The position numbers were made by a program, and so were the translations under genes. A DNA stretch of 46,692 bases, taken from assembly GCF_001194135.2 (NCBI RefSeq), contig NC_068991.1:61537151-61583842 (forward strand), written 5' to 3'. Numbering within the stretch: position 1 is the first letter of the stretch; each line of letters opens with the position of its first letter. Source of the DNA: Octopus bimaculoides. Taxonomy: Eukaryota. This document shows positions 1 to 38,168 of this stretch, one piece after another. A model generated the notes under the pieces. It was not told where the DNA came from and ran no database searches. It saw only the letters and a list, made by a program, of their open reading frames with translations.

Positions 1-289
1 CTATTGAGAAGCACAAACTACAACACCGCAACTTTGTGGTGGGAACCAGCCACTTTGATTCCTGAGGTAAAATTATAATGGAAGGTTCTAATTTAAACAC
101 AAATATTTTATAACAAAACAGCTTGTATCACCATAACATCAGTTGTAGATTCAGTTGGAGTGGTAACAGGGTATGTGTGATCAACAAAAGTATTGCTATT
201 TCAATTTTCATTGGAATTTTCCTTGAAGACGGCGAACTAACAAAATCATTAGAGTGGAATGTCTCATATTTGTTCCAAGAGTCTGGATT

Positions 290-468
290 CTGGATTTTGT
301 TAGAGGGTTGCAGCAGGAGTACTCATTCTTGTCAGCTGAGTGGAGTGGAGCAACATAAAATGAAATGTTTTATTCAAGATCACAACACATCACCTGGTCC
401 AGCAATCAAAACTGCAATTTTAAAATCATGCATCCAACATCCTAACCATCAGGTCACATGCCTCCACT
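290..468 (-). mobile_element. Degenerate tRNA-derived SINE (head related to 9330/18855 family)
   Basis: Reverse strand gtggaggcatgtgacctgatggttagg...ttgattgctggacc...ctccactcagctg matches A/B-box head and body of other copies in the window. Confidence 0.65.
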
Positions 469-522
469 GGTTAATCAGGACTGACCCAGGGCTAAACAAC
501 AACAATAACAAGGATGTCTTAC

Positions 523-637
523 CTAGTTCACTGATGGTCAAGTCTTTCAAGGTGCGCTTACAGGATATACAACGTCCTGCTGACTTGTAACACAAACACC
601 GGCCACTTTCCGAACGATGAGGATCGAAAGGTCTCAC
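523..637 (-). CDS. Coding exon (115 nt, phase 0 to 1) of an IL-17 receptor-like gene: VRPFDPHRSESGRCLCYKSAGRCISCKRTLKDLTISEL
   Basis: Acceptor tttttctgattatttcag| and donor CTAG|gtaaga; only one open frame; continues in frame from exon 6703-6750. The VxPF...C...C.RT pattern resembles the F/G strands of the IL17RA/B second domain (similarity judged from memory). Confidence 0.8.
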
Positions 638-690
638 CTGAAATAATCAGAAAAAGCAGGATTAAAAAGGGGCCATGATAGGGAGTTTAA

Positions 691-900
691 CCCTTTGGCA
701 TTCTGATTATCCTGTCAAATGTAATGCTTATCCATGGTTTGAGTTAATCTTGCATCATCTAGAAGCTTTGAGATTTCAATGATTTGATTGTTTATTTTCA
801 GAATGACAATGTAGAATGCAAATGAAAGACAGAATCTGGATGGCTTGAACACAAAACCAGTAGAATAACTGGGCTGGTTATGGCCAATTTAAGCACTTTT
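691..900. mobile_element. TTAA/CCC-ended (piggyBac-type) MITE, right end decayed
   Basis: Starts ttaa|ccctttggcattc; a reversed related copy lies at about 27633-27810. Confidence 0.55.
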
Positions 901-1228
901 AAATGTTGCTTTAACTTGGGCAAACAACCAACTCATCACATTTTTATCATCTTCTCTTTCCTCTTTCTCTCTCCATTCTGGGGTAGTTTTGTTTCTTCTC
1001 TGATGCAAGACAGCTTTTTACCGTCCCTCAATACTATACAAGTTCTTCAGTTGGGAAGGTGCATCTTGCAAGTTACTTGGTAACCTCANNNNNNNNNNTT
1101 CTTCAGTTGGGAAGGTGCATCTTGCAAGTTACTTGGTAACCTCACTGCTGCTGGTGCCACATAAATATCACCAAATACACTCTGTAAAGTGATTGGCAGC
1201 ATTAAGAAGGACATCCAGTCATCAAACT

Positions 1229-1519
1229 GGCACTCCATTGGTTACGATGATGAGCATTCCAGTTATTTCGACCAATGGAACAGCCTGCTCATGAAATTAA
1301 CTTGCAAGTGGCTGAGCACTCCACAGACACATGAAACAGAATGTGATAAGGCTGGACCTTTGTAATACAGCTGCAACTCGTTTTTGTCGGCTGAGTCTTT
1401 CAGTTTCCGTCTACCAAATCCACTCACAAGACACTTGCCGAAGGTGCCATGCAGTGGGACTGAACCCGGAACCATGTGGTTGGTAAGCAAACTACCTACC
1501 ACAGAGCCACTCCTGCACC
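1229..1519 (-). mobile_element. Chimeric tRNA-SINE: family-A head joined to family-C tail
   Basis: 1385-1519 matches the head of 2978-3383; 1229-1385 matches the tail of 14586-14970 (aacagcctgctcatgaaattaac.tgcaagtggctgagc.ctccacagacac). Confidence 0.75.
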
Positions 1520-1568
1520 TATATATAATATATGCATGTATGTATGTATAAATGCATATATTCCACAT

Positions 1569-1602
<34 letters not shown>

Positions 1603-1713
1603 ATGTATGTGTGTGTGTATGTGTGTATGTGTGATTATTTGGTAAGCAGTGCCAGATTTTACAATCTTTAAATGTTGATATTTTATAAGCTAAAAGCTTA
1701 TAAGCATTCAGTG

Positions 1714-1870
1714 TGCATTGACTAAGGTAAATAATTGAAAATATCAGGGCATATAAGCCCTCCACGGAAAAAAATAGGGTTTGGCATATGCATGGGTACA
1801 GCAAACCCTTCTGTTTTTTCCATCGATGGCAACATGCCCCAATATTAGACTATTTACCTTGGTCAATGCA
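1714..1870. repeat. Foldback / MITE-like imperfect palindrome
   Basis: Left arm tgcattgactaaggtaaata...ggaaaaaa.tagggtttg pairs with right arm (reverse complement tgcattgaccaaggtaaata...ggaaaaaacagaagggtttg); short central loop near 1786-1802. Confidence 0.65.
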
Positions 1871-2130
1871 GGGTGATTGCTTCTAAGCTTTAAGCCTATA
1901 AAATGTTACAATATATGAGTATATGCATATATATGTACATGTATGTACATATAGATACATATCTGGGTACATGACATTGCAAAAAAAAAAACATAGACAA
2001 AATGATAAACAAGGTACAAAAAACAAGCAGGCCACATAGAGAACATATCCTTCATCAGCTGCCACCATTAAAACACCAGTGTTTCGAAGAGTTAGTGAGA
2101 GAGAGAGAGAGGAGGGAGAGAAAGAGGGAG

Positions 2131-2172
<42 letters not shown>

Positions 2173-2181
2173 ATACATATA

Positions 2182-2470
2182 GGATCACAACATATAGGTA
2201 CATTGCGGCATAATTTCTTTTCCTCAACAGGCCCTGCCCTGTTTAACATTGTCCCAAAACAGATCCTATCAGCTTTAAACTGAGTCTAGACAGCTTTCTT
2301 CAAAGAATACCAGATAAGCCACAACTCAGTACTGGATACAACTCATTACTTGAATGGACCATAGACAAAACTTGACTGTAAAAAGGATTTAGATAATCCT
2401 ATCAGGTGGTGCTATTAAATTAGACATGGCCTGGACCAATCTTTGGTTGAAACACATCTAAGCTTTATCT
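2182..2470 (+). mobile_element. 3' end of a CR1/L2-group LINE (ORF2 C-terminus plus 3'UTR)
   Basis: Translates GSQHIGTLRHNFFSSTGPALFNIVPKQI, then after a frameshift ISFKLSLDSFLQRIPDKPQLSTGYNSLLEWTIDKT* (stop 2373-2375); GP.LFN...FK..LD.FL..IPD.P is a typical C-terminal motif of such LINEs. Confidence 0.75.
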
Positions 2471-2977
2471 AAGTTTTATATATATGAATGAGAAAAGAGG
2501 AAGAAAATAAAAGCAGTGGGAGTGAAAGAGGTGGAAAGAAGCAAAGAAAGAAAGAAAAAAGCAAGGAGATAATGTCAAAAGAAAAAGCAGACAAACAATA
2601 AAATAAGACAGACAAAAAAGAGGAGGCAGCTTATACTGGGCCAACCATTTCCATAAATGTTGACCTAATATTGACAGCAACACATAAAACCACCACTGCC
2701 ACCATCCATCCATCACTTACAATACTACAAGTTCTTCTAAGCTCTAAACAGCATCCACCCCTGACAGTAGCTGACACTGTCACCATCCTTCATCTTTCCA
2801 ATAATAGAGGCTGTTGTTGCTGCTGCCACCCAACACCATAGCCATGGGTAGTAACATAACATATATATGTATATATATATATATCTATATATACAAGAAT
2901 AAGGGCAGAGAATCGTCAATTAATAATAGAATTAATAATTAACAATTCTGCCAAGTAGTTCAGTATATATATATATA

Positions 2978-3383
2978 TACTCTTTTACTCTTTTATTTGT
3001 TTCAGTCATTTGACTGCCGCCATGCTGGAGCACTGCCTTTAGTCGAGCAAATTGACCCTGAGACTTATTCTTTGTAAGTCTAGTACTTATTCTATCGGTC
3101 TGTTTTGCCGAACCACTAAGTGACTGGGACATAAACACACCAGCATCGGTTGTCAAGTGATGCTGGTGGGACAAACAAAGACACACAAACACACAGACAT
3201 ATATATATATATATACACATATATACGACGGGCTTCTTTCAGTTTCCGTCTACCAAATCCACTCACAAGGCTTGGGTCGGCCCGAGGCTATAGTAGAAGA
3301 CACTTGCCCAAGGTGCCACGCAGTGGGACTGAACCAAGAACCATGTGGTTGGTAAGCAAGCTACTTACCACACAGCCACTCCT
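2978..3383 (-). mobile_element. Full-length tRNA-SINE family A (ggagtggctgtgtggtaag head, internal (TA)n/(TG)n, gagtaaaaga tail)
   Basis: Near-identical blocks recur at 10470, 18003, 22506, 29860, 32199 and 46507; B-box ggttcagtcc; ccttgggcaagt after the head. Confidence 0.9.
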
Positions 3384-3456
3384 ATATATTACATATCTCT
3401 TTTACTCTTTTACTTGTTTCAGTCTTTTGACTGTGGCCATGCTGGAGCACCGCCTT

Positions 3457-3493
<37 letters not shown>

Positions 3494-4754
3494 CATATAT
3501 GATGGTGGTATTGTAATTGGTGGGTGTGGCAACAGCAGTGGCAGCAGTAGTGACTTCCATTGTTGAAGCAGGTGAAAAATGAGTGTGTGAGAGTAACGGA
3601 AACCTGTAGGTTGATGCTGTACTTTAAGACTTCCTTAGCACTGAACACTCCTAATTATACTCAAGCACTCAAGCAAGCATATGGGTGTGTGTCATTGACG
3701 TTGACTGTGATATTGCATGTGTGTGTATATCTATCTATTATATATATATATATATATATAAAAGATAATAAGAGTGAAAAAACTACAGAAGGCTTGTGTT
3801 ACATGGCTAAAGTATATATTTAAATTATGTCAGAAAAATGTAAGAAAAATGTTAGGAAAATGTTATAAAATCTTTTTGGTATATAAACATTGTATTTTGA
3901 GAAATAACCAGTTTCGTGTTGTCTTTTCAAATTTCTCTACTTCATTGTGTCGTGTTCGTTCCAGTCTGAGAAAGGAGAATTCTAGATATATATATATATA
4001 TATATACATATATATATAATATTTACTCTTTCACTTGTTTCAGTCATTTGACTGTGGCCATGCTGGAGCACTGNNNNNNNNNNNNNNNNNNNNNNNNNNN
4101 NNNNNNNNNNNNNNNNNNNNNNNNNNNNNNNNNNNNNNNNNNNNNNNNNNNNNNNNNNNNNNNNNNNNNNNNNNNNNNNNNNNNNNNNNNNNNNNNNNNN
4201 NNNNNNNNNNNNNNNNNNNNNNNNNNNNNNNNNNNNNNNNNNNNNNNNNNNNNNNNNNNNNNNNNNNNNNNNNNNNNNNNNNNNNNNNNNNNNNNNNNNN
4301 NNNNNNNNNNNNNNNNNNNNNNNNNNNNNNNNNNNNNNNNNNNNNNNNNNNNNNNNNNNNNNNNNNNNNNNNNNNNNNNNNNNNNNNNNNNNNNNNNNNN
4401 NNNNNNNNNNNNNNNNNNNNNNNNNNNNNNNNNNNNNNNNNNNNNNNNNNNNNNNNNNNNNNNNNNNNNNNNNNNNNNNNNNNNNAATACAAAAAAGGTG
4501 TTTTTTTTGTATGATTGTGTATAGAGGAATATATTATTTTGTTTAAAAGAGTTCCAACACTGTCTGTTTTTTATGTTTTATTTATATTCCTGCAGAACCA
4601 ATGTGGGGTATAGAATATGGAATATACAATATATAATATAATATAAAATAAAATAAAATAAAAATGGATGGCACCATTAAAGAAAGTATTGAATGTAGAT
4701 GAAATATTGAGTGTTCAATATAAAGGATCAAATATATAAATATAAATATATAAA

Positions 4755-4794
4755 GGCGACTCGAGTTTCAGGGCTATTTCCCTTCGTCATGGCC
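4755..4794 (-). ncRNA. Minimal type-I hammerhead-ribozyme-like motif (Penelope pLTR type)
   Basis: Minus strand GGC-CATGACGA-AGGG aaatag CCCT-GAAA-CTCGAG-TC/GCC: stems I and II pair, stem III is the palindrome ACTCGAGT, GUC cleavage triplet; one extra A after C3. Confidence 0.55.
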
Positions 4795-5433
4795 GGTATG
4801 ACAGACTAGTCAATTCGATGATGTCAGGGCCTCATTAGGGATTAAATAATCCAAAAATTTCACTGGTTAATCACTATCAGATACGAAAGAATGAAGGATA
4901 TCTTAACAGTTGACTAATAATATTTTTTACTATCTAACTTATCCTTCATTTATTTTATTATATAATTCTTCTCTTGCATATTTAAGTATTTCTTTTTCTT
5001 TAAATTTATATACTATATATTTTTACATAAATTTATATTTTTCTTTACTTTTTATCTTATATTTTCTTACTTTACCTTTATTTCTGTTATTTTAATTTTA
5101 TTTCATCTTTAAATCTGTAATTCACTAGTTAAATACATGCGCATAATGTATGTGATCTAACTTCTTAAACTTATATGTAATTCAGCTGCATCTTTCAAGG
5201 AATATGTTAACCTTTGTTGTATAAGCTTATAAAGCCCTGATAAGATTCTGTCCCCATATAGTTGAAAATGATGACCAATTCCTAGCATATGAGTCTACTC
5301 AAATGCATAGAATTATGAATCACCTAGAGGCATAAACTGAAACATATATGTAGGTTTTTGGCATCTGCCATTTCTTTTAGAGCTTTATAATTCATTTGTA
5401 TCATTTTTATAAAAAAAAACATTCTTTCATTAT

Positions 5434-5472
<39 letters not shown>

Positions 5473-6271
5473 NNNNNNNNNNNNNNNNNNNNNNNNNNNN
5501 NNNNNNNNNNNNNNNNNNNNNNNNNNNNNNNNNNNNNNNNNNNNNNNNNNNNNNNNNNNNNNNNNNNNNNNNNNNNNNNNNNNNNNNNNNNNNNNNNNNN
5601 NNNNNNNNNNNNNNNNNNNNNNNNNNNNNNNNNNNNNNNNNNNNNNNNNNNNNNNNNNNNNNNNNNNNNNNNNNNNNNNNNNNNNNNNNNNNNNNNNNNN
5701 NNNNNNNNNNNNNNNNNNNNNNNNNNNNNNNNNNNNNNNNNNNNNNNNNNNNNNNNNNNNNNNNNNNNNNNNNNNNNNNNNNNNNNNNNNNNNNNNNNNN
5801 NNNNNNNNNNNNNNNNNNNNNNNNNNNNNNNNNNNNNNNNNNNNNNNNNNNNNNNNNNNNNNNNNNNNNNNNNNNNNNNNNNNNNNNNNNNNNNNNNNNN
5901 NNNNNNNNNNNNNNNNNNNNNNNNNNNNNNNNNNNNNNNNNNNNNNNNNNNNNNNNNNNNNNNNNNNNNNNNNNNNNNNNNNNNNNNNNNNNNNNNNNNN
6001 NNNNNNNNNNNNNNNNNNNNNNNNNNNNNNNNNACACACACACATATATTTACATACATTTATATACATATATTTATATATCTATACACACGTACACGCA
6101 CATGAACACATGCACGCACACACACACACACACACATATAGAGAGAGAAAGGCAATTATGTGGATTAAGAAATTAATAGTTTGGGTATGAAATACAAAAG
6201 AGAGAAAGCAAAAGGTGGAGACTTTCAGATGATGAATTTTTAAGTATAAATATATAGATATTTATATTAGA

Positions 6272-6560
6272 CGACTGCGCTGGTAGGGTCATGTGTTGTA
6301 AATGAATGAGGACAGCTGTGTGAAAAAGTGTCACACCCTAGCAGTTGAGGGAACCTGTGGAAGAGGTAGACCCAGGAAAACCTGGGACGAGGTGGTGAAG
6401 CATGACCTTTGAACATTGGGCCTTACTGAGGCAATGACTAGTGACCGGGACCTTCGGAGATATGCTGTGCTTGAGAGAACCCGACAAGCCAAGTGAGACC
6501 ATAGCTCATGGCTTATGCCAGTGGGTGTAACCAGCTCATTTATGAATACCCCTCGTTTAT
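6272..6560 (+). mobile_element. RTE-clade LINE 3' fragment (decayed)
   Basis: Translates RLRW*GHVL*MNEDSCVKKCHTLAVEGTCGRGRPRKTWDEVVKHDL*TLGLTEAMTSDRDLRRYAVLERTRQAK* (stop 6494-6496); RLRWxGHV...GRP..TW is the RTE C-terminal motif. Confidence 0.9.
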
Positions 6561-6702
6561 TCTCTGAATGAGAAATGCTACGTTGCAAAACAGAGATAAC
6601 AGTTCCCCCTTAAATATTTCCAGCCCCTCAGCAGCACCCATTATGGCTACTACCTTTAGTATGCAAACATAAATATACAAAAGAGAATACAGATACACTT
6701 AC

Positions 6703-6750
6703 GGATATGGTATATTTGCCATTGCAGATATTGTTGAAGACAACTTCCTT
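6703..6750 (-). CDS. Coding exon (48 nt, phase 0 to 0) of the IL-17 receptor-like gene: KEVVFNNICNGKYTIS
   Basis: Acceptor atattatctcttacag| and donor TCC|gtaagt; supplies the FnIII E-F segment (F.N...G.Y) missing between the two flanking exons, in the required phase. Confidence 0.85.
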
Positions 6751-7651
6751 CTGTAAGAGATAATATTTCTATTATTATAACAATTATAATCATATATTTG
6801 CTACAAGGGTAACATAATTAGTTGAAAACAATACAATTCAGACTAAAAAACACAGAATTATACAAATGCATGTTTCGCATTAATTTTTTTACGGATAGAA
6901 CATTGGCTCTGTTGGAGACGTTTCCATACCTAATTATTATATTTTCTAGTAGGGGTTCTGAATGAGAAGGGTAGATGCGAGACAACCACCAAAAATGTCC
7001 ATGCAAATGTTTTCGGCCATCTCACATTAACCAATCAAGATACAGAGTTTTAAAACAGAAAAATGTCCATAATGAAAATTTTTTTTACATAATGCTCATT
7101 TCAAGAAGTAGCACATTGTTAATATTTCATGTGGCTTCCCTGAGCTTCAATAATAGCTTCAGTGCACCTGGGAAGAGATGCATACAAGTCCTTCATCATC
7201 TTCACATATATGTGGTGATACTGTTTAAAGAACAGAGAGGCAGGCAAACAGACATAGGTAGAAGAAGAGAGAGTAAGAGGAGACACCGAGATAGAGAGAC
7301 AAAGAAAGAGAGAGCAAGAGCAAGATAGAGAAAAAGATAGAGAGAGTAAGAAAGAAAGAAAGAAAGATAGAGAGAGCAGGAAAGAGAGAGAGAGAGCTAG
7401 AGAAAGAGTGAAGAGAATGAGAGATAAAGAGAGTAAGAGGGAGTTAGAGAAAGAGAGAGCAAGAGAAGGAGAGACCAAGAGAGAGAGAGAGAGAGAGAGT
7501 AAGAGAGAAAATGAAAGAAACATTAAAATGTTTTCTGTCAAATACGTCAGCATTAAAACAGCAAAGCCAAATATGTGCCACCAAAATGGTTCTGTGAAAG
7601 TGTCTCATGCTCTCTTGTGATGCTGTGAAAATAACAGCAGTTAGAACTTAC

Positions 7652-7800
7652 CTCAGCTGTTTTTTTAGTTATATTACGAATACCTCCAATTAACTCCACT
7701 TCGTAATACACAAATTTCATTTCTTGTGGGGTATGTGAAAATCGCACTTTTAGGCTGTGATGATCTTTATCAACATGTGTGCTGATATTAGATTGCCATT
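7652..7800 (-). CDS. Coding exon (149 nt, phase 1 to 0) of the IL-17 receptor-like gene: (Q)WQSNISTHVDKDHHSLKVRFSHTPQEMKFVYYEVELIGGIRNITKKTAE
   Basis: Acceptor ctattttctttacatttcag| and donor CTGAG|gtaagt; open frame; W..N.S...L.V.F.H.P..F..Y pattern like IL17RD WKPRNLNIS...MQVSFDHAPHNFGFRFFY; two N-glycosylation sequons (NIS, NIT). Confidence 0.85.
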
Positions 7801-8120
7801 CTGAAATGTAAAGAAAATAGGATTAGAGATTCTGTTAGAAACGGAATTCAAGTACACTAATAAATTAGTTTAGAAACTTTATCATTTTTTTGCATCATTT
7901 AACAAAATCTTTAAAGATAAAAATTTAAAGAAACAGTATTTTGGCATATATCTTAAGGGCTTAGAATAAATAAACTTGTTTTATTCTGTACGTTTTCACA
8001 ACTTAATTCATAGTATTTTCGCATTATGTGCCAGTTTGGCTGGGTAACATTGCAAGCAAGCAAGATTCAATTTCACTTTTTATGTATTATAGTAATATCC
8101 CACACAACAAATGATTTCTT

Positions 8121-8408
8121 GTGCTGAAACACTTTCTGGACATTTGACCTGACCCCCAAACTGATACCTCTGCACTTCTTCGTCTGGCTGAACTTGTTCT
8201 GTCCCTCAACTGCTTCTCATTCGCGGTGGATTTTTACCAACAGTTCTCGGGAGTGGACATGGGGATGAGAATGGGTCCCAACAATGTGAACCTGTTCGTT
8301 GGCTATGTTGAGGTCCAAATATTCTCACAGTTTACTGGTCCAATCCCGAACTATACGGTCATTATATCCTTCCATCCTGCCCTCAAATTCTCCTGCACTA
8401 TCTCGAAG
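8121..8408 (+). mobile_element. Penelope-like element reverse-transcriptase fragment
   Basis: VLKHFLDI*PDPQTDTSALLRLAELVLSLNCFSFAVDFYQQFSGVDMGMRMGPNNVNLFVGYVEVQIFSQFTGPIP...SFHPALKF; matches PLE RT motifs (G.AMG..MGP..ANLF, FHP.LKF). Confidence 0.85.
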
Positions 8409-9064
8409 TTTAGCAGAGGGTGATGTTCTGCTGGTGAGGTTGAAGGTAGTGAGAAGGGGTGAGAGGGAGAGGAGAGAGATATGAGGAAGAGAGAGAGGAG
8501 AGAACAGAGATAGAGAGATGATGATAGCGGTAGTGGTAGTGATGGTGGTTGAGGTAGTAGTAGTGACTGAATAGTGAAAATGTATTTTTCTAACTAATTT
8601 TTTTACATTACCTATCACTTAACGCATACACATAAGTGCAATTCTGTGAAATATTCATGCTTATTAATTTGGCAGACGTGCAATTTCACTAAAGGTTGTA
8701 TCATATCTATGGTGATATTTTTTTAGTTTATGGAAAAAAATAGAAAAATAAGAGCGAAAATTTATTTTATGAGTGCTGTGTATTAAGTCTATAAAATTGT
8801 GTATGAAGTATATAAAGTGTATTAATTAATCATCGTATTCCAATTTCTTTCAGTTACAGACACAACACAGACTATGCTTTCAGGATTTTTGTATAAAGTT
8901 TTCAGAGATAACCCAATAGGTTTACCATTAATCCCATGAAATATTCATGGGTTCTACTAGTACATATATATATATAACAGCTATATTTGTAATATAACAT
9001 TAACAAGCATTAAATCAGACATACAGACAGACAGATGCACAGAAATAAATAAAATAGTTCTTAC

Positions 9065-9089
9065 GGTATGGATAACATAACCCATTGGT
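9065..9089 (-). CDS. Coding micro-exon (25 nt, phase 0 to 1) of the IL-17 receptor-like gene: TNGLCYPY
   Basis: Acceptor tattttctttatcttttgcag| and donor ACC|gtaaga; length gives the phase-1 end the next exon needs; NGLCYPYQW aligns with IL17RD DNLACKPFW. Confidence 0.75.
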
Positions 9090-9329
9090 CTGCAAAAGAT
9101 AAAGAAAATATACATTAATAACATATATATACATATATATAAATATGCAATATACCTACATATACAATATATTATTACACACACAAACATATTTAATTCT
9201 TGTACAAGAAGCTACGTCAAAACTTTGATAGATGCAACAGGTCTATGATCAGAAGGTAACTGCAGTGATTCCTTAATTCATTCAGTTGTGAAGCATTTGG
9301 CATATATGATTTCTATAATGCTACAATGG

Positions 9330-9585
9330 TGAAGGCACATGGCTCAGTGGTTAGAGCGTTGGGCTTACAATTGTGAGGTTGTGAGTTCAATTCCTAGAAA
9401 GAGCTGTGTTGAGTTCTTTGAGCAAGACATTATATTTTCACATTGTTTCAGTTCATTCAGCTGTAGGAATGATTTGTAATGTCATTGGTGCCAAGCTGTA
9501 TCGGGCTTTGTCTTTCCCTTGGACAGCACTGGTGGCATGGAAAGGAGAGGCTGGTATGCCTGAATGAATGCTGGTCTTCCATAAA
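9330..9585 (+). mobile_element. tRNA-SINE family D (truncated by gap)
   Basis: gaaggcacatggctcagtggttagagcg...gagttcaattcc...ttgagcaagacat; same family as 18855-19190. Confidence 0.85.
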
Positions 9586-10344
9586 NNNNNNNNNNNNNNN
9601 NNNNNNNNNNNNNNNNNNNNNNNNNNNNNNNNNNNNNNNNNNNNNNNNNNNNNNNNNNNNNNNNNNNNNNNNNNNNNNNNNNNNNNNNNNNNNNNNNNNN
9701 NNNNNNNNNNNNNNNNNNNNNNNNNNNNNNNNNNNNNNNNNNNNNNNNNNNNNNNNNNNNNNNNNNNNNNNNNNNNNNNNNNNNNNNNNNNNNNNNNNNN
9801 NNNNNNNNNNNNNNNNNNNNNNNNNNNNNNNNNNNNNNNNNNNNNNNNNNNNNNNNNNNNNNNNNNNNNNNNNNNNNNNNNNNNNNNNNNNNNNNNNNNN
9901 NNNNNNNNNNNNNNNNNNNNNNNNNNNNNNNNNNNNNNNNNNNNNNNNNNNNNNNNNNNNNNNNNNNNNNNNNNNNNNNNNNNNNNNNNNNNNNNNNNNN
10001 NNNNNNNNNNNNNNNNNNNNNNNNNNNNNNNNNNNNNNNNNNNNNNNNNNNNNNNNNNNNNNNNNNNNNNNNNNNNNNNNNNNNNNNNNNNNNNNNNNNN
10101 NNNNNNNNNNNNNNNNNNNNNNNNNNNNNNNNNNNNNNNNNNNNNNNNNNNNNNNNNNNNNNNNNNNNNNNNNNNNNNCCTCATCCACATATTGGTGGGG
10201 GGGATATGCTCTCACACACGTAGACAGAGGCGGGAGGGGTGGAGGGGAAGATTGAGAATAACATTACAAGAGAAACATAAAAACATCTGATGTGAAACAA
10301 GCCAGCATTGAATCAGCACCGCCAAATAAACGGCACCAAAATGA

Positions 10345-10396
10345 CTGCGCCAAAGTGGCTGTGCCAAAGTGGCTGCGCCAAAGTGGCTGTGCCAAA
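10345..10396. repeat. 14-bp minisatellite with alternating variants (ctgcgccaaagtgg / ctgtgccaaagtgg)
   Basis: About 3.7 units read directly; preceded by degenerate units. Confidence 0.85.
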
Positions 10397-10469
10397 AGAT
10401 TTCATACCCTGTGGCTACACGAGAATGTTGGACATTCTTCTCTGACCCAAGGAAACTATCTTCTATCTT

Positions 10470-10975
10470 TCCATCTTTTATCTATTTCGGTCATTAGACT
10501 GGCCATGCTGGGGCAAAGACTTGAAGAATTTTAAGTGGAACGAATCATTCCCAGTACTTTTTCTATTTTTTAAAAGCCTGATATTCATTTTATTGGTCCT
10601 CTTTTGCTGAGCCGCTAAGTTACGGAGATGAAACTCACCAACACTGGTTATCAAGTAGTGGTAGGGGTCAAATACACACACACACACACATGCACACACA
10701 TACACACACACAAAACACATGCACATGCACACACATACACACACACAAAACACATGCGCTTGTACACACACACATATTCACACAAACACATGGGCATGCA
10801 CACACACACACATGCTCACTCACACACATATACAACGGGCTTTTAGTTTCCGTTTACCAAATCTACTCACAAGAGTTTGGTCAACCTGAGACTATAAAAG
10901 ACTATAAAAGAAGACACTTGCCCAAGGTGCTATGCAGTGGGACTGAACCTGGAACCATGTAGTTGAGAAGCAACC
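10470..10975 (-). mobile_element. tRNA-SINE family A with expanded (CA)n centre
   Basis: Matches 2978-3383 on both sides of the microsatellite. Confidence 0.85.
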
Positions 10976-12724
10976 ATGATTGCCCCTATATGTTTCCCTT
11001 TTTTTTTTCCTTTTTGTTTATTTGTCATGTGCAGGCAAAACACTTCATTTCACGTTACTCCAGTCTGCTCAGCTGGCAAAAGTGAGTAATCCTGCAACAG
11101 ACTGGCGTCCCATCCAGGTGGGGAATTTATACGCCAAGGAAACAGGGAACCCGGCCCTTATGAGTCGGTATGACTCGAGAAGGTAACCTTTACATTTACT
11201 TTACCACCACTACTACCACCACCAAAACCACCATCCCCACCACTAACACCGCCACCGCCACTGCCAACACCATCACTGCAGCTACAGTCACTACCACCCC
11301 ACCATAACTACTGCCACCCTCACCATAACCCCTTCTCATCACCACCACCACCACCACCACAACAACCAGCATCACCATCACTAACATCACCACAGCCACC
11401 ACCACCATTAACACACCACCACCACCACCACCACTACCACTGCCACTGTTACCCATACCCTCACCACCACTAACTGCTACCATATGGTAGCACTAGGCCC
11501 GACACACACACACACACACACTCAGACACATTAAAATCCACAGACTAAAAGAGGAAAACATTAAAAGAACAACAAAAAGAATTGGTAATACGATAAAGCA
11601 AAATAAAAAAATAAAAGTCTGATTACGTAATGAATGAACAGCGATGATGACAATGTGTAAACATGTTATCTAACTGTTTTACTCCCCCCCCCACCACACA
11701 TCTAAGTGTCTGTACGCTCATCTGAACAATGTAGCTAGTTGTTAAGGAAGACAGAGAGAACAGAATATGTCATTTACAGTGTCTTGCGAACAAAGCACAA
11801 CACAACGTAATGTCATTAATCCTCAGAAACGATCTTCCGCGAAAGGCAGATGAATGAATGAGATATTATACACTTTTACACATCTCTTGCACACGCCACG
11901 TATTTGAGATGCGCTTTGGTTGGTTCCTGCACTTGCTTACATAATTGACATGCTTGGCTGGTTAGCTAGCAGACATACAGTTCACACACACACAGACACA
12001 CACACGTATGTATGTATGTATGTATGTATNNNNNNNNNNNNNNNNNNNNNNNNNNNNNNNNNNNNNNNNNNNNNNNNNNNNNNNNNNNNNNNNNNNNNNN
12101 NNNNNNNNNNNNNNNNNNNNNNNNNNNNNTTATATATATATATATATACAATATATATATATATATTATATATATATATGTAGGAAGAGAGAGAGAGAGA
12201 GTGTGAATGATACAGAAGAGTCCGTCATGTACACACACATACACATATATACACACACATACACACATATACATATACACATACATACATTATATATATA
12301 TACACACATATATTTATAATACACACACACATATATTTTCATAAATATATACATAAATATTTTGACATCACAGGAATTGAGTAACTCACACTCGCATACA
12401 CATGCATGTACATACACACACACACACACAGAAATATGAAATGCCTTTTATATTTAGGGAAAAGAGAATGCACAAATTAAGCACAGTTCAACCGAGGAGT
12501 TTCTATTGAAAGTCTTGTAAACATTTCCTTGTTTATCAGAAAATGATCTCTTTTATGAATGCCAGCTTTCTATTCCTGGTCATCTGGTAGTATTTTTAGT
12601 TTCAGTTTCACTTTAGTTTGCTTTTCAACCTTTCAGGGTCAATAAATCAAGAAATAGCATCAACAGCATCATCTAACATCCTCTCACCCTTTTTCGTCTT
12701 TTTCATATTATTATTATTGTATTA

Positions 12725-13113
12725 GTGGAGGCGCAATGGCCCAGTGGTTAGGGCAGCAGACTCACGGTCATAGGATCATGGTTTCGATTCCCAGACCGGG
12801 CGTTGTGAGTGTTTATTGAGCGAAAACACCTAAAGATCCACGAGACTCCAGCAGGGGGTGGTGACAAACCCTGCTGTACTCTTCCACCATAACTTTCTCT
12901 CACTCTTACTTCCTGTTTCTGTTGTGCCTGTAATCCAAAGGGTCAGCCTTCTCACACCCCGTGTCACGCTGAATATCCCCGAGAACTACGTTAAGGGTAC
13001 ACGTGTCTGTGGAGTGCTCAGCCACTTGTACGTTAATCTCACGAGCAGGCAGTTCCATTGTTTGGATCAACTGGAACCCTCGACGTCGTAAGCGACGGAG
13101 TGCCAACACACAC
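12725..13113 (+). mobile_element. Full-length tRNA-SINE family C with 12-bp TSD
   Basis: gtggaggcgcaatggcccagtggttagggc head, ggtttcgattccc B-box, gagtgccaaca tail; TSD attattgtatta at 12713-12724 and 13114-13125. Confidence 0.9.
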
Positions 13114-13512
13114 ATTATTGTATTAAGCCTCACAGCTTATATTGCTGGGTATGATGGGACATATCAGCTGTCCACAGCCAGTAGACTAAGGTGACACTTG
13201 TTTTACTGATCATGTTTCAAAAACCCTGCAAAGAATTTTTGCAGTTCGAAGCAATGCTGATCTTTGTAGGCATTTTACCTTCACACTTGCACCGGTCTTT
13301 TTCAACCATGTTGCTAGTTGAGTGCTGATAATTCCAAGTGCACCAATTACTATTGGTATCAAATCTACTCTCTTCACTGACCACAACCTTCGTATTTCCC
13401 ACTTTAAATCATCATAATTGTCTATCTTTTCTTCTTTCACATTGATCCTGTTGTCACTGGGGCATGCTATGTCGATTATCATATACGTTTTTTGTTTTTT
13501 ATTCACCACAAT
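13114..13512 (-). mobile_element. 5'-truncated Dong/R4-clade non-LTR retrotransposon (restriction-like endonuclease C-terminus plus 3'UTR), family B
   Basis: NIVVNKKQKTYMIIDIACPSDNRINVKEEKIDNYDDLKWEIRRLWSVKRVDLIPIVIGALG...LQRSALLRTAKILCRVFET*; flanked by (TAA)n. Confidence 0.85.
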
Positions 13513-13530
13513 ATTATCATTATTATTATT

Positions 13531-13945
13531 TAGTAGTCTTATTTTAGTCACGTGCTTTCACTGCACTACCGAGTGCAGCTCTGTGCGCTTTGGGTATGTG
13601 ATGTGGTTTGTTATGATGCTCTTATTTTTACTGTATTGAAAGTGTGTTTTACATAGGATGTGTGCATTGCCTAGTAGTGCTATTTTCTGTATGTTGTATA
13701 TACTTGTAAGTCCTGGTGTGTTTGTTATGTATTTGTCTGAATATTTTTTTATTATACCTAAGGCACCTACTATGATAGGAATTGTTTCTGTGTTTAGACT
13801 CCACATTCGAGTTACCTGTATTTCCAGGTCTTTGTATTTTGAAAGTTTCTCCATTTCTTTTAGAGAAACGTTGTCATCTGTTGGTATTGATACATCGATT
13901 AGAAAGCATTTTTTTCTTGATGATCTCTGACAACTATATCCAGCA
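13531..13945 (-). mobile_element. 5'-truncated Dong/R4-clade element, family A
   Basis: LDIVVRDHQEK.CFLIDVSIPTDDNVSLKEMEKLSKYKDLEIQVTRMWSLNTETIPIIVGALG...IQKIALLGNAHIL; 3' end gtgaaagcacgt...actact followed by (TAA)n. Confidence 0.85.
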
Positions 13946-13979
<34 letters not shown>

Positions 13980-13980
13980 G

Positions 13981-14020
13981 TTCAGTAGTTTTATTTTTAT
14001 AACGTGCTTTCACTTCAGTG
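13981..14020 (-). mobile_element. 3' tip of another Dong/R4 family-A copy
   Basis: Reverse complement cactgaagtgaaagcacgttataaaaataaaactactgaa matches the 3' end of 13531-13945 and is followed by (TAA)n at 13947-13979. Confidence 0.75.
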
Positions 14021-14585
14021 GCATTTCATGTCTTTATATTTTGAGTTCAAATTCCACCAAGGTCAACTTTACATTTTATCTTTTTGGGGTTGGGAAAACA
14101 AGTACCAGTTGAGCATTGGGGTTGATGTAATTTGAACACACAACCTACAAGAAAGGTGGTCCAATAGCATTATCCATTCAGCAATCCCACACATCTGGAG
14201 TAACAGGAACTGCCAGCTATGAGCTGCCAGAGATTCAATAAAAGCTATGGCCCTTTGCCAAGTGCAAAAGAGAGTAATGTTTACAAAGTCTCTTCTTTTA
14301 CTGGTTCTTTACAACCCAAACAACCTTACTTAGTAACAGTTTCTAGTCATTTTTATTAAGAGTGAGGAGGAAGGAGATGGTTCCAAGCGCTTCTTAAATA
14401 ACATGCGAATAGCCTCTGAGGAAATCTAAAATTTAATGACTGTCGAAGTTAATTGTTTTGGACAAGGTATATATGTTTATTATATCAAATATACATTCGA
14501 CCATTATCTAATTTGCATCTATAGATTATTTCTGTAAAACCAGATGCCTGCATTTTAATTTCACTTACTCGTACAACCACAAGAA

Positions 14586-14970
14586 TTGTTGTTGGCACTC
14601 CGTCGCTTACGACGTCGAGGGTTCCAGTTGATCCGATCAACGGAACAGCCTGCTCATGAAATTAACGTGCAAGTGGCTGAGCGCTCCACAGACACGTGTA
14701 CTCTTAACATAGTTCTCGGGGATATTCAGCGTGACACGGTGTGACAAGGCTGGCCCTTTGAAATACAGGCACAACAGAAACAGGAAGTAAGAGTGAGAGA
14801 AAGTTGTGGTGGAAGAGTACAGCAGGGTTCGCCACCATCCCCTGCCGGAGCCTCGTGGAGCTTTTAGGTGTTTTCGCTCAATAAACACTCACAACGCCCG
14901 GTCTGGGAATCGAAACCACGATCCTATGACCACGAGTCCGCTGCCCTAACCACTGGGTCATTGCGCCTCC
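14586..14970 (-). mobile_element. Full-length tRNA-SINE family C with 13-bp TSD
   Basis: Inverted copy of 12725-13113 (about 90% identical by eye); TSD acaaccacaagaa at 14573-14585 and 14971-14983. Confidence 0.9.
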
Positions 14971-15879: not shown

Positions 15880-16003
15880 CATACTACTAATACCACTACT
15901 ACTGCTACTACTACCACCACCACTACTACCATTATCACACCTACTACAACTACCACCACCACCTCTACCATTACTACCACAATTACCACCACCATCACCA
16001 CAC

Positions 16004-16037
<34 letters not shown>

Positions 16038-16048
16038 CATTACCACAC

Positions 16049-16079
<31 letters not shown>

Positions 16080-16080
16080 C

Positions 16081-16121
<41 letters not shown>

Positions 16122-16190
16122 CACTACCATTACCACACCTACTACAACTACCACCACCACCACTACCATTACTACCACAATTATTCTTCT
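15880..16190. repeat. Compound (ACC/ACT)n trinucleotide repeat
   Basis: Read directly; source of the poly-T/V/P/S ORFs in the track. Confidence 0.95.
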
Positions 16191-18002: not shown

Positions 18003-18405
18003 TTTTACATGTTTCACTCATTTGACTGCGGCCATACTGAAGCACCACCTTAAAGGGTTTTTTAAGTCAAAGAAATCAAGCCCAACTTATTCTTTGTAAG
18101 CTTAGTACTTACTCTATTGGTCTCTTTTGCTGAACCGCCAAGTTACAGGCGTGTAAACACACCAACATCGGTTGTCAAGCGATGGTGGGACACAACGCAG
18201 ACACTAAGACACACACACACACACACACTCACACATATAGACATATACATATGACGGGCTTCTTTCAGTTTCCTTCAACCAAATCCACTCACAAGGCTTT
18301 GGTCGGCCCGAGGCTATAGTAGAAGACACTTGCTCAAGGTGCCACACAATGGGACTGAACCCAGAACCATATGATTGGGAAGCAAGTTTCTTAACGCACA
18401 GCCAT
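18003..18405 (-). mobile_element. tRNA-SINE family A
   Basis: Matches 2978-3383 along its length. Confidence 0.9.
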
Positions 18406-22505: not shown

Positions 22506-23150
22506 TTTTACTTGTTTCAGTCATTTGACTGTGGCCATGCTGGAGCAACACCTTGAAGGGTTTTAGTTGAACAAATCAACCTACCAGGACTTATATATTT
22601 AGGCGATGAGCTGGCAGAAATGTTAGCATGCCGGGCGAAATGCTTAGCAGTATTTTGTCTGCCGCTACGTTCTGAGTTCAAATTCCACCGAGGTCAACTT
22701 TGCCTTTCATCCTTTCGGGATCAATAAATTAAGTACCAGTTACACACTAGGGTCGATATAATTGACTTAATCGATTTGTCTGTCCTTGTTTGTCCCCTCT
22801 GAGTGTAGCCCCTTGTGGGCAGTAAAGAAATAAGGACATATATACTTTTTTTAAGCCTAGTACTTATTCTATTGGTCTTTTTTGCTGAACCACTTAGTTA
22901 CAAGGATGTAAACACACCAACACCAATCGTCAAGCAGTAATGGGGGACAAACACAGACACAAGGGCACACACACACACACACACATAATGGGTTTCTTTC
23001 AATTTCCGTCTACCAAAATCCACTCACAAGGCTTTGGCCGACCCAAGGCTATAGTAGAAGACACTTCGTCAAGGTACCACATAGTAGGACTGAACCCGGA
23101 ACCCTGTGGTCAGAAAGCAAGCTTCTTACCACACAGCTGCAGCTGTGCCT
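22506..23150 (-). mobile_element. tRNA-SINE family A interrupted by a family-B SINE
   Basis: Family-A tail 22506-22600 and remainder 22833-23150 are collinear with 2978-3383. Confidence 0.85.
22601..22832 (+). mobile_element. tRNA-SINE family B (long-tail form) with imperfect 15-bp TSD
   Basis: ggcgatgagctggcagaaatgttagc...gagttcaaattcc...tttgcctttcatcctttcggg...ccccttgtgggcagtaaagaaata; TSD aggacttatatattt / aggacatatatactt. Confidence 0.9.
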
Positions 23151-32198: not shown

Positions 32199-32551
32199 CT
32201 GGGTTCAGTCCCACTGCGTGGCACTTTGGGCAAGTGTCTTCTACTATAGCCTTGGGCCGACCAAAGCCTTGTGAGTGGATTTGGTAGAGACGGAAACTGA
32301 AAGAAGCCTGTCGTATATATGTATATGCATATATATGTGTGTGTGTGTGTTTGTCCCTCCCACCATCGCTTGACAACCGATGCTGGTGTGTTTACGTCCC
32401 CGTCACTTAGCGGTTCGGCAAAAGAGACCGATAGAATAAGCACTAGGCTTACAAAGAATAAGTCCTGGAGTCGGTGTGTTCGATTAAAAGGCGGTGCTCC
32501 AGCATGGCCGCAGTCAAATGACTGAAACAAGTAAAAAGAGAGTAAAAGAAT
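32199..32551 (+). mobile_element. tRNA-SINE family A
   Basis: Reverse complement of 2978-3383 from the B-box onward. Confidence 0.9.
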
Positions 32552-34589: not shown

Positions 34590-35700
34590 GAATTGGGAAA
34601 AATATATAAACCTGGGAGAAAATGCCTTGTAGTGTTTTTTTCTGCCTGTTTGTGCTCAGAATTTGAATCCCATCAAAGTCACCTTTGACCTCCCTTCTTC
34701 AGGATTGATTAAAAATACTGATCAAATAGTAGCATTGATTTCATTGTCTGACCCTCCCTAAACAAGATGTCTGACCTTGTGCTTAAACTTAAAAAATGCC
34801 TTTCGTCTTTTCAGGGATCAATAAAATAATAGAGAATCAATCAAATTAATACTGGGGTCAGCGTAATAGACTTGCTCCCACTCTTCAAAATTGAATTGCT
34901 GGCCTTGTGCCTATAGTGTAAAAGATGATGATTATTATTATCATTATTATTTTTAATATTATTATTATTATTATCATTATTATTTTTAATATTATTATTA
35001 TTATTATTAGTTTTAATATTATTATTATTATTATCATTGTTAGTTTTAATATTATTATTATTATTATTATCATTATTAGTTTTAATATTATTATTATTAT
35101 CATTATTATTTTTAATATTATTATTATTATTATCATTATTATTTTTAATATTATTATTATTATTATCATTATTATTTTTAATATTATTATTATTATTATC
35201 ATTATTATTATTATTATTATTTTTTTTTTTTTATTATTATGGCAGTGAACTGGCAGAAACGTTAGCAAGCCAGGCAAAATGCTTAGTGGTATTTCGTCTG
35301 CCGCTATGTTCTGAGTTCAAATTCCGCCGAGGTTGCCTTTGCCTTTCATCATTTTGGGGTCAATGAATTAAGTACCAGTTATGCACTGGGGTCGATGTAA
35401 TCAGCTATTCCCTCTCCGAGATTTCAGGCCTTGTGCCTATGATAGAAAGGATTATTATTATTACTTAAAGCGGTGAGCTGGTAGAATCGTTAGCACACTG
35501 AGCAAAATGCAAAACAGTATTTCATTTATTTTTACGTTCTGAGTTCAAATTCCACCAAGGTCGACTTTGCCATTTTTCATCTTTTCGGGCTTGATAGAAT
35601 AAGTACCAGTTGAACACTGGGGTTGCCATAATCAACTAGTCCCCTCCCCAAAAATGTCAAACTTTGTGCCTCTAGTAGAAAGGATTATCCTTATCATGAT
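34590..35700 (+). mobile_element. Head-to-tail array of about four family-B SINEs around an (ATT)n minisatellite (34925-35235, about 30-bp higher-order unit punctuated by ttttaat)
   Basis: Copies at about 34590, 34790, 35240 and 35468; each ends ggccttgtgcct...agaaaggattattatt. Confidence 0.8.
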
Positions 35701-35778: not shown

Positions 35779-35873
35779 TAAGCAGACAGGCGTTTGGTAG
35801 AGCAGCAAAAGTGGTGAATATAATAGCATATGCAGTACGACAGAGACTGTAGTTGTTATCCTAGTGAAAGGTT

Positions 35874-35910
<37 letters not shown>

Positions 35911-36006
35911 ACAGAGGGAAAGGAAAATCAGAGACTAGAACAAGACAGAACAGACAGTTCATAAAAGGAAGTAATGTGAACAACATTAGCATTGCAAGAG
36001 GAGGGT

Positions 36007-36045
<39 letters not shown>

Positions 36046-37458
36046 AAAAAGAAACTGAGAGAGAGTGAGGGAATGAAAGTGAGAGAGTCGGCACATTATG
36101 TAGTGCAAAGAAAATCAAAAGTCAATAACCTTCCTCTCTCCCCCACCCTCAATCTACCATCTCCTCTTACTGCTCCCCTGCCGCCCCCACCTCGTCCTTC
36201 TCTCAGTGCTTAGGAAAGCTAATTACGCATTCATGCGACTATACCCCCTTTTCTCTTTCATTCCACGCTGCACCCTGAAGCATTGCAAAGCTACTCTGGG
36301 TGTTCCACCCTGGGCATGTATGGCAGATGGATGTGATGGAAGGAGAAAAAAAAATGATAGAGAGGAGGAGGAGGAGGAGGGGGAGGAGAGGGTAAGCAGA
36401 AAAAAACTCCCTCTACTATAAATAGCAAGGGGAGTCGAGAAACAAGCACAAATTTCAATATTAAACAACAACAACAACAACAAAAAACCCTGCAATGTGA
36501 ATGGCAGGAACAACACCAACAACAAATGCAAACTCCATATGGTTATCATATTCAATATCCATCCTCCATCACAAACCTACACATTCTCCTCTCTCTCTCT
36601 AAATTACGACATATATTGAGGCCACTGTATCTGCAGACACATGTACTCATGCGCACATGTGTGCCCCACTACTCTAACCAACGTAGGCATCAGCGAAGCA
36701 TTTGATGGAGTCAAGTGCTTCAAGAAATGTACCAAACATTTCCTTAATAAATAACACAAAACATCGGCTAATGAATTACCTCTTACAAATTTTCAACTCT
36801 ATATTTAAGCTTATGCCATAAATATATCAAAAGCATGCATAATTTCTAATTTCTTCAATGGTATCCCACAAGAACATGCGTTTCCATCAACCTTTTTCAA
36901 GCTATAATTACAAGACCTTCTCCTTCTCAGCACCTCTGCAAAACACAGACACACATAGACACACACACACACATACCCGCATAACATAATGTTATGCAAA
37001 TAACATTATGTTTATATTTACGCCACCCCCCACTACCATTCTTCAGACACGCAGCTGCAGGCACAGCTACACCAATGCTTTCAACAATCTCATAGAAACT
37101 TGGTTCCAAAAAAAACCCAGCAGTCTTGAAAATAGCACCGACCGAATCCTCCATCTTGCTTCACACCAGCAGCTTGAAAAGAGCATCGAATACAACAGGC
37201 CATTAATGCACTGAATAACATATTCGTAGCCCTACCTCCACAGACATGCACACACAAACACACAGATGCGTGTGTACACACATGTGCATGCATACACTCA
37301 TGCATGCACACACACATTGATGTGCACACAAGTGCACATGCACACACACACACACACACAAGCACACACATACACATGCACACACACACACACACACACA
37401 AGAATGATAAACAAGACAAAAATACAAGGAGATATTACTTAAACAGTTTGGTGACATT

Positions 37459-37489
<31 letters not shown>

Positions 37490-37937
37490 AGATGTATTAA
37501 TTAAGTAAAACAATGCACAAACCTATTATTCTCAGCGCTCAAGTACCACCACATTCAGCGACAAACAGAAGCAGCCACGGAGGCACACAAACAATAGAAT
37601 AGATTGCCACATACGCCCAGACTGGTAGCATATTTTGGGTTGTGCATTTTCAGTGTTTATTTTGATGTGTGATCATCATCATCATCATAAACATCATCAC
37701 CATTTAATGCCAACTCTTCCTCGCTTGCATGGGTCAGATGGAATGTGTTGAGACAGATTTTTGTTTGGTTGGATGCTGTTCCAGTCACCAAGCCCCCAAC
37801 TGTTTCCAAGCAAAATATTTTCCCATGGACAGACATGTTTCCCTGTAAGACTGGAAACAGCATCACTTGTATAACAGCGATGCAGATACATAAATACACA
37901 CACACACACACATACTATGGGCATTCACACACACAAA

Positions 37938-38168
37938 GGTGGCGAGCTGGCAGAAACGTTAGCACGCCGGGTGAAATGCTTAGCGGTATTTTGCCTGCCG
38001 CTACATTCTGAGTTCAAATTCCGCCGAGGTTGACTTTGCCTTTCATCCTTTCGGGGTCAATTAAATAAGTACCAGTTACGCACTGGGGTCGATATAATCG
38101 ACTTAATCCGTTTGTCTGTCCTTGTTTGTCCCCTCTGTGTGTAGCCCCTTGTGGGCAATAAAGAAATA
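37938..38168 (+). mobile_element. Young family-B SINE (long-tail form) with 18-bp TSD, nested in a family-A SINE
   Basis: TSD actatgggcattcacaca at 37914-37931 and 38173-38190; flanks rejoin into the family-A (CA)n-acgggcttctttcagtttcc region. Confidence 0.9.

Follow-up and report, generated by a model that had tools for sequence, protein, structure and literature searches.

Vertebrate IL-17 receptors are single-pass membrane proteins with fibronectin type III (FnIII)-like ectodomains and a cytoplasmic SEFIR domain (PMC8353272). The IL-17 co-receptors of C. elegans, ILCR-1 and ILCR-2, signal via the Act1 homolog ACTL-1, probably through their SEFIR domains (PMC7190641). For Octopus bimaculoides an expansion of the IL-17 genes to 31 has been reported (PMC8353272). 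This octopus ligand expansion is large, and the octopus receptors are hardly described in the literature. We analyzed a 46,692-nucleotide (nt) stretch of O. bimaculoides DNA, called the window below, which carries on its minus strand four exons of the gene LOC128249101. These exons probably form the complete Ig_ILCR1 ectodomain of a short-ectodomain IL-17-receptor-like gene, one of at least two that are tandemly related, and the gene would continue from there to a stalk, a transmembrane helix and a SEFIR domain. All coordinates are those of the window unless another locus is named.

Four exons encode one Ig_ILCR1 domain

The exons, E1 to E4, are located at 9089-9065, 7800-7652, 6750-6703 and 637-523 on the minus strand and are 25, 149, 48 and 115 nt long. 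Each is preceded by a polypyrimidine tract and AG and followed by GTAAG. Joined, they amount to 337 nt, in which frame 0 encodes a peptide of 112 amino acids (aa) without stops and the other two frames are stop-rich. The peptide begins TNGLCYPYQWQSN and ends TLKDLTISEL; the complete frame-0 reading is TNGLCYPYQWQSNISTHVDKDHHSLKVRFSHTPQEMKFVYYEVELIGGIRNITKKTAEKEVVFNNICNGKYTISVRPFDPHRSESGRCLCYKSAGRCISCKRTLKDLTISEL. E1 (9065-9089) encodes TNGLCYPY plus one nucleotide, is bounded by AG and GT, and has 22-nt counterparts with the same splice sites at two related loci, the locus of an O. bimaculoides paralog (L001) and a gap-free O. vulgaris locus (L002). E2 (7652-7800) encodes the N-terminal strands of the domain and E3 (6703-6750) encodes KEVVFNNICNGKYTIS; their O. 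vulgaris counterparts are 149 and 48 nt. E4 (523-637), whose last codon is broken off in phase 1, encodes the end of strand F, a loop with the motif CxC...CxxC, and strand G. The entire set is present with equal splice sites and phases in L001 (22/146/48/115 nt) and in L002 (22/149/48/115 nt). A preliminary description of this DNA had given the coordinates, lengths and phases of the four exons together with the stop-free 112-aa peptide, and all of these are correct when compared with the sequence, the splice sites, the public gene models and the two related loci.

The 112 aa are found at 100% identity in two independent public models. UPI0006951F44 (136 aa) begins at E1, and XP_052827855.1 ('uncharacterized protein LOC128249101 [Octopus bimaculoides]', 169 aa) has a signal-peptide exon in front, E1 being the second coding exon of LOC128249101. 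A chance origin of the exon chain is ruled out by the identical public models and by the exon structure kept in L001 and L002. The gene had been called hidden, but both models already splice all four of its exons. It had also been suggested that a public model may be truncated or split through the loss of the 25- and 48-nt exons. Both models keep these exons; truncation as such is confirmed, but at the 3' end, where each reads through the donor of E4. Public databases already list the gene, the way it is spliced and its Pfam domain.

The annotated range of LOC128249101 covers 103 kb. Its signal-peptide exon, as given in XP_052827855.1, was searched for in the window and is not present there. 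Because this exon is located outside the window, positions 9090-46692 are part of a very long first intron, which separates the signal-peptide exon from E1; this sequence is rich in repeats and microsatellites and contains no other exon of the family. A tblastn search of the whole window with 20 family proteins returns the four exons and no others.

Pfam family PF23608 (Ig_ILCR1, 'ILCR1 Ig-like domain', which takes its name from C. elegans ILCR-1) matches the peptide over positions 2-109 of the 114-position model with E=6.4e-20 and 71.8 bits, against a cut-off of 27. In an alignment of 14 sequences from cephalopods and bivalves, the four cysteines of the motif CxC(x6)CxxC (C88, C90, C97 and C100) are invariant, as are G69, Y71 and P77; at W10 and D79 conservation is 90% or higher. 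The preliminary description regarded the cysteine motif as an extra loop of this particular receptor. It is instead an invariant hallmark of the family, found in 14/14 homologs, and its four cysteines fall within the Pfam Ig_ILCR1 model. The position proposed for the cysteines, in the F-G hairpin, agrees with an AlphaFold2 model calculated from the 14-sequence alignment (predicted local distance difference test, pLDDT, 92.7; predicted template modeling score, pTM, 0.84). The model has seven strands, and the 25-residue connection between the last two (residues 78-102) contains all four motif cysteines.

When the model is compared with the Protein Data Bank (PDB) using Foldseek, FnIII domains lead at probability 1.00 (integrin beta4, EphA2, NCAM, class I/II cytokine receptors) and dominate the top 50, with a best E of 2e-3 (none ≤1e-3) and TM-scores of 0.5-0.6. 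The predicted structure thereby supports an Ig/FnIII-like beta-sandwich fold. Searching the spliced peptide with HMMER and Foldseek, as had been suggested, yields the Pfam Ig_ILCR1 match on the one hand and generic FnIII domains only on the other. The specific likeness to the vertebrate IL17RA and IL17RD ectodomains that had been drawn from the sequence does not appear in Pfam, in PDB sequence and profile searches or in Foldseek. Pfam IL17R_fnIII_D1 and IL17R_fnIII_D2 give no match to the peptide at E≤10, the Foldseek top 50 contain no IL-17R chain, and no IL-17R in the PDB is matched at E≤10 by the single peptide, by the 14-sequence profile or by the full-length O. vulgaris homolog. The PDB sequence searches return weak FnIII, NOMO and low-complexity RAD23B matches only.

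On sequence grounds the IL-17-receptor-like label nevertheless stands, because the peptide has the Ig_ILCR1 match and because its octopus homologs combine a signal peptide, this domain, a mucin-like stalk, a transmembrane helix and SEFIR. The earlier proposal that the peptide is an ectodomain of IL-17-receptor type is upheld to this extent by the Pfam score and by the transmembrane and SEFIR segments of close homologs.

Relatives and the 3' end of the gene

An exhaustive HMMER search identifies 28 relatives of the peptide; a word-indexed protein search, whether queried with the 112-aa peptide or the 14-sequence profile, returns the gene's own model and nothing else. The paralog encoded at L001, LOC106879934 ('mucin-17-like'; XP_052827853.1 and XP_014785174.1), is 79% identical to the peptide. 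O. vulgaris CAI9729820.1 (P0004) is 44% identical, and Argonauta, Sepia-type and bivalve proteins follow. UniProt names the relatives 'ILCR1 Ig-like domain-containing' or 'SEFIR domain-containing' proteins. Ig_ILCR1 and SEFIR are found together in O. vulgaris P0004 and P0057, in O. sinensis P0053 (precomputed annotation) and P0055, and in Argonauta P0006; the SEFIR match in the octopus family has a Pfam E of about 1e-11. SEFIR is also present in the Sepia-type protein P0016, which can be aligned with the domain yet has no Pfam Ig_ILCR1 match at E≤0.01.

In the architecture of the family, a signal peptide leads to one Ig_ILCR1 domain and a mucin-like stalk rich in Ser, Thr and Pro; the transmembrane helix comes next, then SEFIR on the cytoplasmic side, and last a C-terminal tail. 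The stalk of the relatives is short or mucin-like (…STPVSSTPVIS…). The transmembrane helix of the paralog is IILWAVIGSLAAIITAFSFICFI, and a transmembrane helix is also present in the orthologs. Two O. vulgaris proteins, CAI9729818.1 (P0057, 647 aa) and CAI9729820.1 (528 aa), are full-length and have the same architecture and exon plan. Like the vertebrate receptors (IL-17RA to RE; IL-17RD/SEF), the octopus family has SEFIR. Unlike them, with their two or more FnIII-like ectodomains, the octopus short form has one.

The peptide shares the invariant CxC(x6)CxxC, a tryptophan near the start and a G-x-Y...P-x-D core with the bivalve and cephalopod members of PF23608, a family whose members carry SEFIR. 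It differs from some of them in the place of the domain. In bivalve P0019, P0022 and P0025 and in O. bimaculoides LOC106873189 the domain is located at about residue 180, preceded by additional N-terminal sequence, whereas in the octopus short form it comes straight after the signal peptide and is followed by the mucin-like repeat stalk. LOC106873189 represents a second O. bimaculoides type, with about 170 additional residues ahead of the domain; a weak ILCR1_N match is found in P0019 only. In XP_052827855.1 and in all short-form homologs the signal peptide directly abuts the Ig_ILCR1 domain, and tblastn with two-domain members finds no ILCR1_N-type or second-domain exon in the window. The peptide is thus the sole ectodomain of a cephalopod short-form subfamily, and not the membrane-proximal domain of a two-FnIII ectodomain as it had been described.

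A further set of proteins (P0005, P0007-P0014, P0017, P0021, P0024, P0026 and P0029; 499-4224 aa) shows 2-13 repeated matches to the middle of the domain (…G.Y.V.V…). These multi-stretch repeat proteins were not counted among the family members; their matches fit weak Pfam Ig_J and Y_Y_Y matches and look like generic beta-sandwich similarity.

Both public models run past the E4 donor for 24 codons (522-449). The resulting tail (449-522, minus strand), GKTSLLLLLFSPGSVLINQWRHVT followed by a stop, closes both of them; its homologous stretches in the paralog and in O. vulgaris are intronic. The 520 nt downstream of E4, which extend to position 1 of the window, match the paralog intron at about 97-100% identity. 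O. vulgaris has kept the tail region too, as part of an intron that splicing removes. In L001 and L002, E4 is spliced in phase 1 to an exon starting AT GAT TCT AAA TGC (DDSKC). This exon encodes the stalk and the transmembrane helix and is located 3.57 kb (L001, at 34857) or 3.76 kb (L002) downstream of E4; the SEFIR exon is next. The phase-1 continuation exon that had been predicted is thus seen in relatives, namely the L001 paralog and O. vulgaris L002. Judging from these relatives, the window gene would continue with a phase-1 stalk/transmembrane exon and a SEFIR exon, the first of them about 3-4 kb past E4 and hence about 3 kb to the left of window position 1. The 136-aa and 169-aa models would then end artificially, through read-through of the E4 donor.

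An orphan model, A0A0L8G137 (P0056), is a SEFIR-only protein of O. bimaculoides that contains DKKILFLYSHDHQHH. It is about 90% identical to the L001 tail and is therefore a separate copy from L001. It may be a candidate for the missing SEFIR exon of the window gene.

Several observations weigh against a full-length receptor that binds IL-17. The continuation of this copy is read from its relatives rather than from its own sequence, and tblastn with family proteins finds no transmembrane or SEFIR exon within the window. Both public annotations stop at the read-through. A single AATAAA hexamer (374-369, minus strand) is located ~75 nt past the read-through stop in the window copy only and has no equivalent at the matching place in L001 or L002. 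The protein collections searched contain no transcript-derived protein of LOC128249101. No sequence or structure match ties the domain specifically to vertebrate IL-17R ectodomains, and ligand binding is putative.

Some of these observations are accommodated if the window copy is a partial duplicate, which would encode a secreted single-domain soluble IL-17 decoy (signal peptide, Ig_ILCR1 and the 24-aa tail) or be an expressed pseudogene fragment. The end of both public models at the read-through stop, the AATAAA about 75 nt downstream in this copy alone and the tblastn result for downstream exons in the window all fit such a duplicate, as does a frame that is open for 24 codons here but in the paralog reaches a stop after a single codon. 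In O. vulgaris, however, the read-through frame is equally open though the gene is full-length, so openness is uninformative. The tail is ordinary intron, near-identical to that of the paralog and removed by splicing in O. vulgaris, and the GTAAG donor is intact. One AATAAA in an AT-rich intron is expected by chance, and the hexamer gives weak support for a short, intronically polyadenylated, secreted isoform. The mature read-through product has seven cysteines, an odd number, and it lacks the cysteine that is present within about 10 residues past the domain end in 6/6 members checked with sequence beyond the domain. The orphan second SEFIR model in O. bimaculoides also argues against a partial duplicate, which we regard as rather unlikely. 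We therefore favor a receptor with stalk, transmembrane helix and SEFIR.

The labels of LOC128249101 ('uncharacterized') and LOC106879934 ('mucin-17-like') can be changed to IL-17-receptor-like (Ig_ILCR1/SEFIR). The public models of both genes are defective: one has the intron read-through end, and the other loses half of SEFIR in an assembly gap. In the paralog, the N-terminal half of SEFIR appears to fall in the gap at L001 37809-38479 (region 35818-38479), and XP_014785174.1 skips it. XP_052827853.1 ends just past the transmembrane helix with RSIK, which is absent near the transmembrane exon, and its annotated range runs to L001 53.9 kb. The labels for the two loci, the 3' defects of the models, the single-domain mucin-stalk architecture in cephalopods and the exon-4 island described below are added here. 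A known family gains an ordinary member with one modestly interesting evolutionary feature, and knowledge of the family is unchanged.

An island of divergence at exon 4

Window positions 1-10774 are collinear with 23.7-31.8 kb of L001 (CM046611.1) at 92-99% identity, and the window does not overlap L001. The paralog is on the same chromosome and has the same exon structure. It differs from the window gene in its exon 1 (22 nt, compared with 25 nt), in its signal-peptide exon (51% aa identity) and in intron 3, which is 4.8 kb larger in the window. Exon 3 is identical in the two copies (48/48 nt), exon 2 matches at 139/146 nt (95%) plus one codon indel, and exon 1 at 18/22 nt plus one codon indel. 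Exon 4 matches at only 79/115 nt (69%; 53% aa).

The low identity is confined to this exon. In 40-nt intervals the introns flanking exon 4 match at 37-40/40 positions, except for two intervals with a 7-nt indel, and exon 4 itself matches at 26-27/40. The drop in identity to the paralog and its recovery both lie no more than about 20 nt from the exon ends, and the resulting island (503-640 in the window, 31175-31310 in L001) is about 65-69% identical inside introns that are 97-100% identical. The excess of differences in exon 4 over its 150-nt flanks is significant (Fisher p=1.5e-9). Synonymous and non-synonymous divergence (dS and dN) are 0.50 and 0.39 in exon 4, compared with 0.075 and 0.048 in exons 1-3. 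Because dS and dN are both raised and the flanks are near-identical, exon 4 has an older, different ancestry than its surroundings. Either gene conversion homogenized the flanks but spared exon 4, or exon 4 was imported from another donor.

Primate L/M opsin and major histocompatibility complex (MHC) genes have exons that stay divergent while gene conversion homogenizes the introns. The island resembles these cases, as an analogy only, in that the introns of the duplicates are near-identical and one exon, critical for function, has diverged much more at synonymous and non-synonymous sites. It differs in belonging to another gene family.

Near-identical introns beside exon 4 are also what would be seen if the window and L001 were one locus, represented twice as divergent haplotypes or through a duplication in the assembly, and the assembly is gap-rich with at least one unmerged overlap. 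The other collinear blocks, however, are 92-96% identical with many indels and include the 4.8-kb insertion, and the signal-peptide exons differ at nearly half of their residues. O. vulgaris independently has two genes, and NCBI places both O. bimaculoides models as separate loci on the same chromosome. A single locus is extremely unlikely, and we treat the two copies as separate genes.

The exons of the window gene have different nearest relatives. For its signal peptide and exon 1 the nearest sequence is O. vulgaris P0004 (66% and 75%), for exons 2-3 the O. bimaculoides paralog, and for exon 4 O. vulgaris P0057 (66% aa), in which this exon likewise ends ...ISEL. Since different exons are closest to different genes, there is no one-to-one orthology with the O. 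vulgaris genes. Exon combinations also differ in O. sinensis, where one gene has P0057-type 5' exons and a P0004-type exon 4. This gene, LOC115217418 (L003; CM016869.1, 10001-62461), has a signal peptide and exons 1-3 of P0057 type, then a 14-kb intron, and then an exon 4, a stalk and a SEFIR of P0004 type; it could be an unequal crossing-over hybrid or an assembly collapse. The annotation lists O. sinensis LOC115217223, which has only a transmembrane helix and SEFIR, as a locus of its own.

The O. sinensis gene, in which A-type 5' exons are spliced to an exon 4 of another type 14 kb off, raises the question of exon sharing between neighbors. The window exons could be an alternative 5' cassette, with their own signal-peptide exon and promoter, spliced to the stalk/transmembrane/SEFIR exons of the neighboring paralog in the manner of protocadherin or UGT1A genes. 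A gene range of 103 kb for a product of 169 aa and the near-consecutive accessions of the two O. bimaculoides models on one chromosome are consistent with such a cassette. O. vulgaris, however, has two distinct full genes with a slightly different SEFIR exon each, O. bimaculoides has two different SEFIR sequences, and the window overlaps neither L001 nor its 10-kb flanks. These observations make a shared 3' end very unlikely.

Across species, the Ig domain is 44-55% identical, whereas the SEFIR half and tail are 82% identical between L001 and P0057 and 85-87% in other pairs. The ratio of non-synonymous to synonymous change (omega) between species is about 1.0 for the Ig domain (bootstrap 0.6-2.1) and 0.37 for the SEFIR half and tail (0.23-0.63); these estimates are rough, being based on about 110 codons. 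A fast-evolving ectodomain and a paralog-specific exon 4 amid homogenized DNA suggest paralog-specific recognition of putative ligands. One possible reading, which we put forward tentatively and consider less probable than not, is that exon 4 is a specificity module kept different between the tandem paralogs by selection while gene conversion homogenizes the rest, so that the F-G loop is diversified by exon-scale shuffling. This reading is based on the 69% identity of exon 4 within 97-100% identical introns, the divergence of exon 1 as well, a near-neutral ectodomain rate (omega of about 1) and the exchange of exons between paralogs across Octopus species. If it is true, cephalopod IL-17R-like receptors diversify their ligand-binding F-G loop along with the enlarged set of IL-17 ligands.

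By analogy with C. elegans ILCR-1/ILCR-2 and the vertebrate IL-17Rs, the disulfide-rich domain, held off the membrane on an O-glycosylated stalk, could bind one or more of the octopus IL-17-like cystine-knot ligands. Receptor clustering would then allow SEFIR to recruit an adaptor of Act1/CIKS type, leading to signaling of NF-kB/IkB-zeta type. Recognition specific to each paralog would most plausibly lie with E4, the exon that encodes the F-G loop. A short, single-domain, mucin-stalked receptor with a fast-evolving, exon-shuffled ectodomain suggests a route by which ligand and receptor diversity could be matched.

Intron 3, assembly gaps and repeats in the window

The window contains eleven runs of N. 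Three are located within the region of the four exons (1089-1098, 4074-4485 and 5473-6033), all in intron 3 (638-6702, minus strand), and none touches an exon. The junction of exons 3 and 4, between KYTIS and VRPFDP, is gapless in 14/14 aligned family members, and the corresponding intron is 1.2 kb in L001 and 2.4 kb in L002, both gap-free and without an additional exon. Since, in addition, tblastn is limited to the four exons, no coding sequence is hidden in the intron-3 gaps. The 10-N gap (1089-1098) comes from two overlapping contig ends that were left unmerged; it is a false gap, from which no sequence is missing. Identical stretches of 46 nt are found on either side of it (1144-1099 and 1088-1043), and both copies map to L001 30711-30756.

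Most of intron 3 in the window (about 1270-6559) consists of ~4.8 kb of additional, repeat-rich and exon-free DNA, where the paralog has 512 bp. This additional stretch holds both large gaps and a dispersed repeat at 3010-3384 that resembles a short interspersed element (SINE). Dispersed repeats of about 200-350 nt are found throughout the window, at 3172-3384, 18198-18404, 32201-32547 and 46506-46692, with a second set at 22601-22833, 37937-38169 and 45367-45731. They belong to at least two families, occur in both orientations, are present in L001 too, and are probably SINE-like elements. An ARAGORN tRNA scan and an Rfam scan of the window give no match.

An inverted repeat at 12955-14743 has 154-nt arms (93% complementary) around about 1.5 kb. 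Within it are two adjacent, mutually similar minus-strand open reading frames (ORFs), 13210-13551 and 13558-13854 (…IPIVIGALGII…), neither of which has a Pfam match. The unit may be what is left of a transposon. In the upstream intron, the three longest ORFs outside repeats likewise have no Pfam match. Microsatellite and low-complexity arrays of (AGAG)n, (ACC)n, (TAC)n and (ATT)n are located in intron sequence at 7266-7508, 11203-11440, 15882-16178 and 34931-35240, and these arrays give rise to long spurious ORFs in the ORF list.

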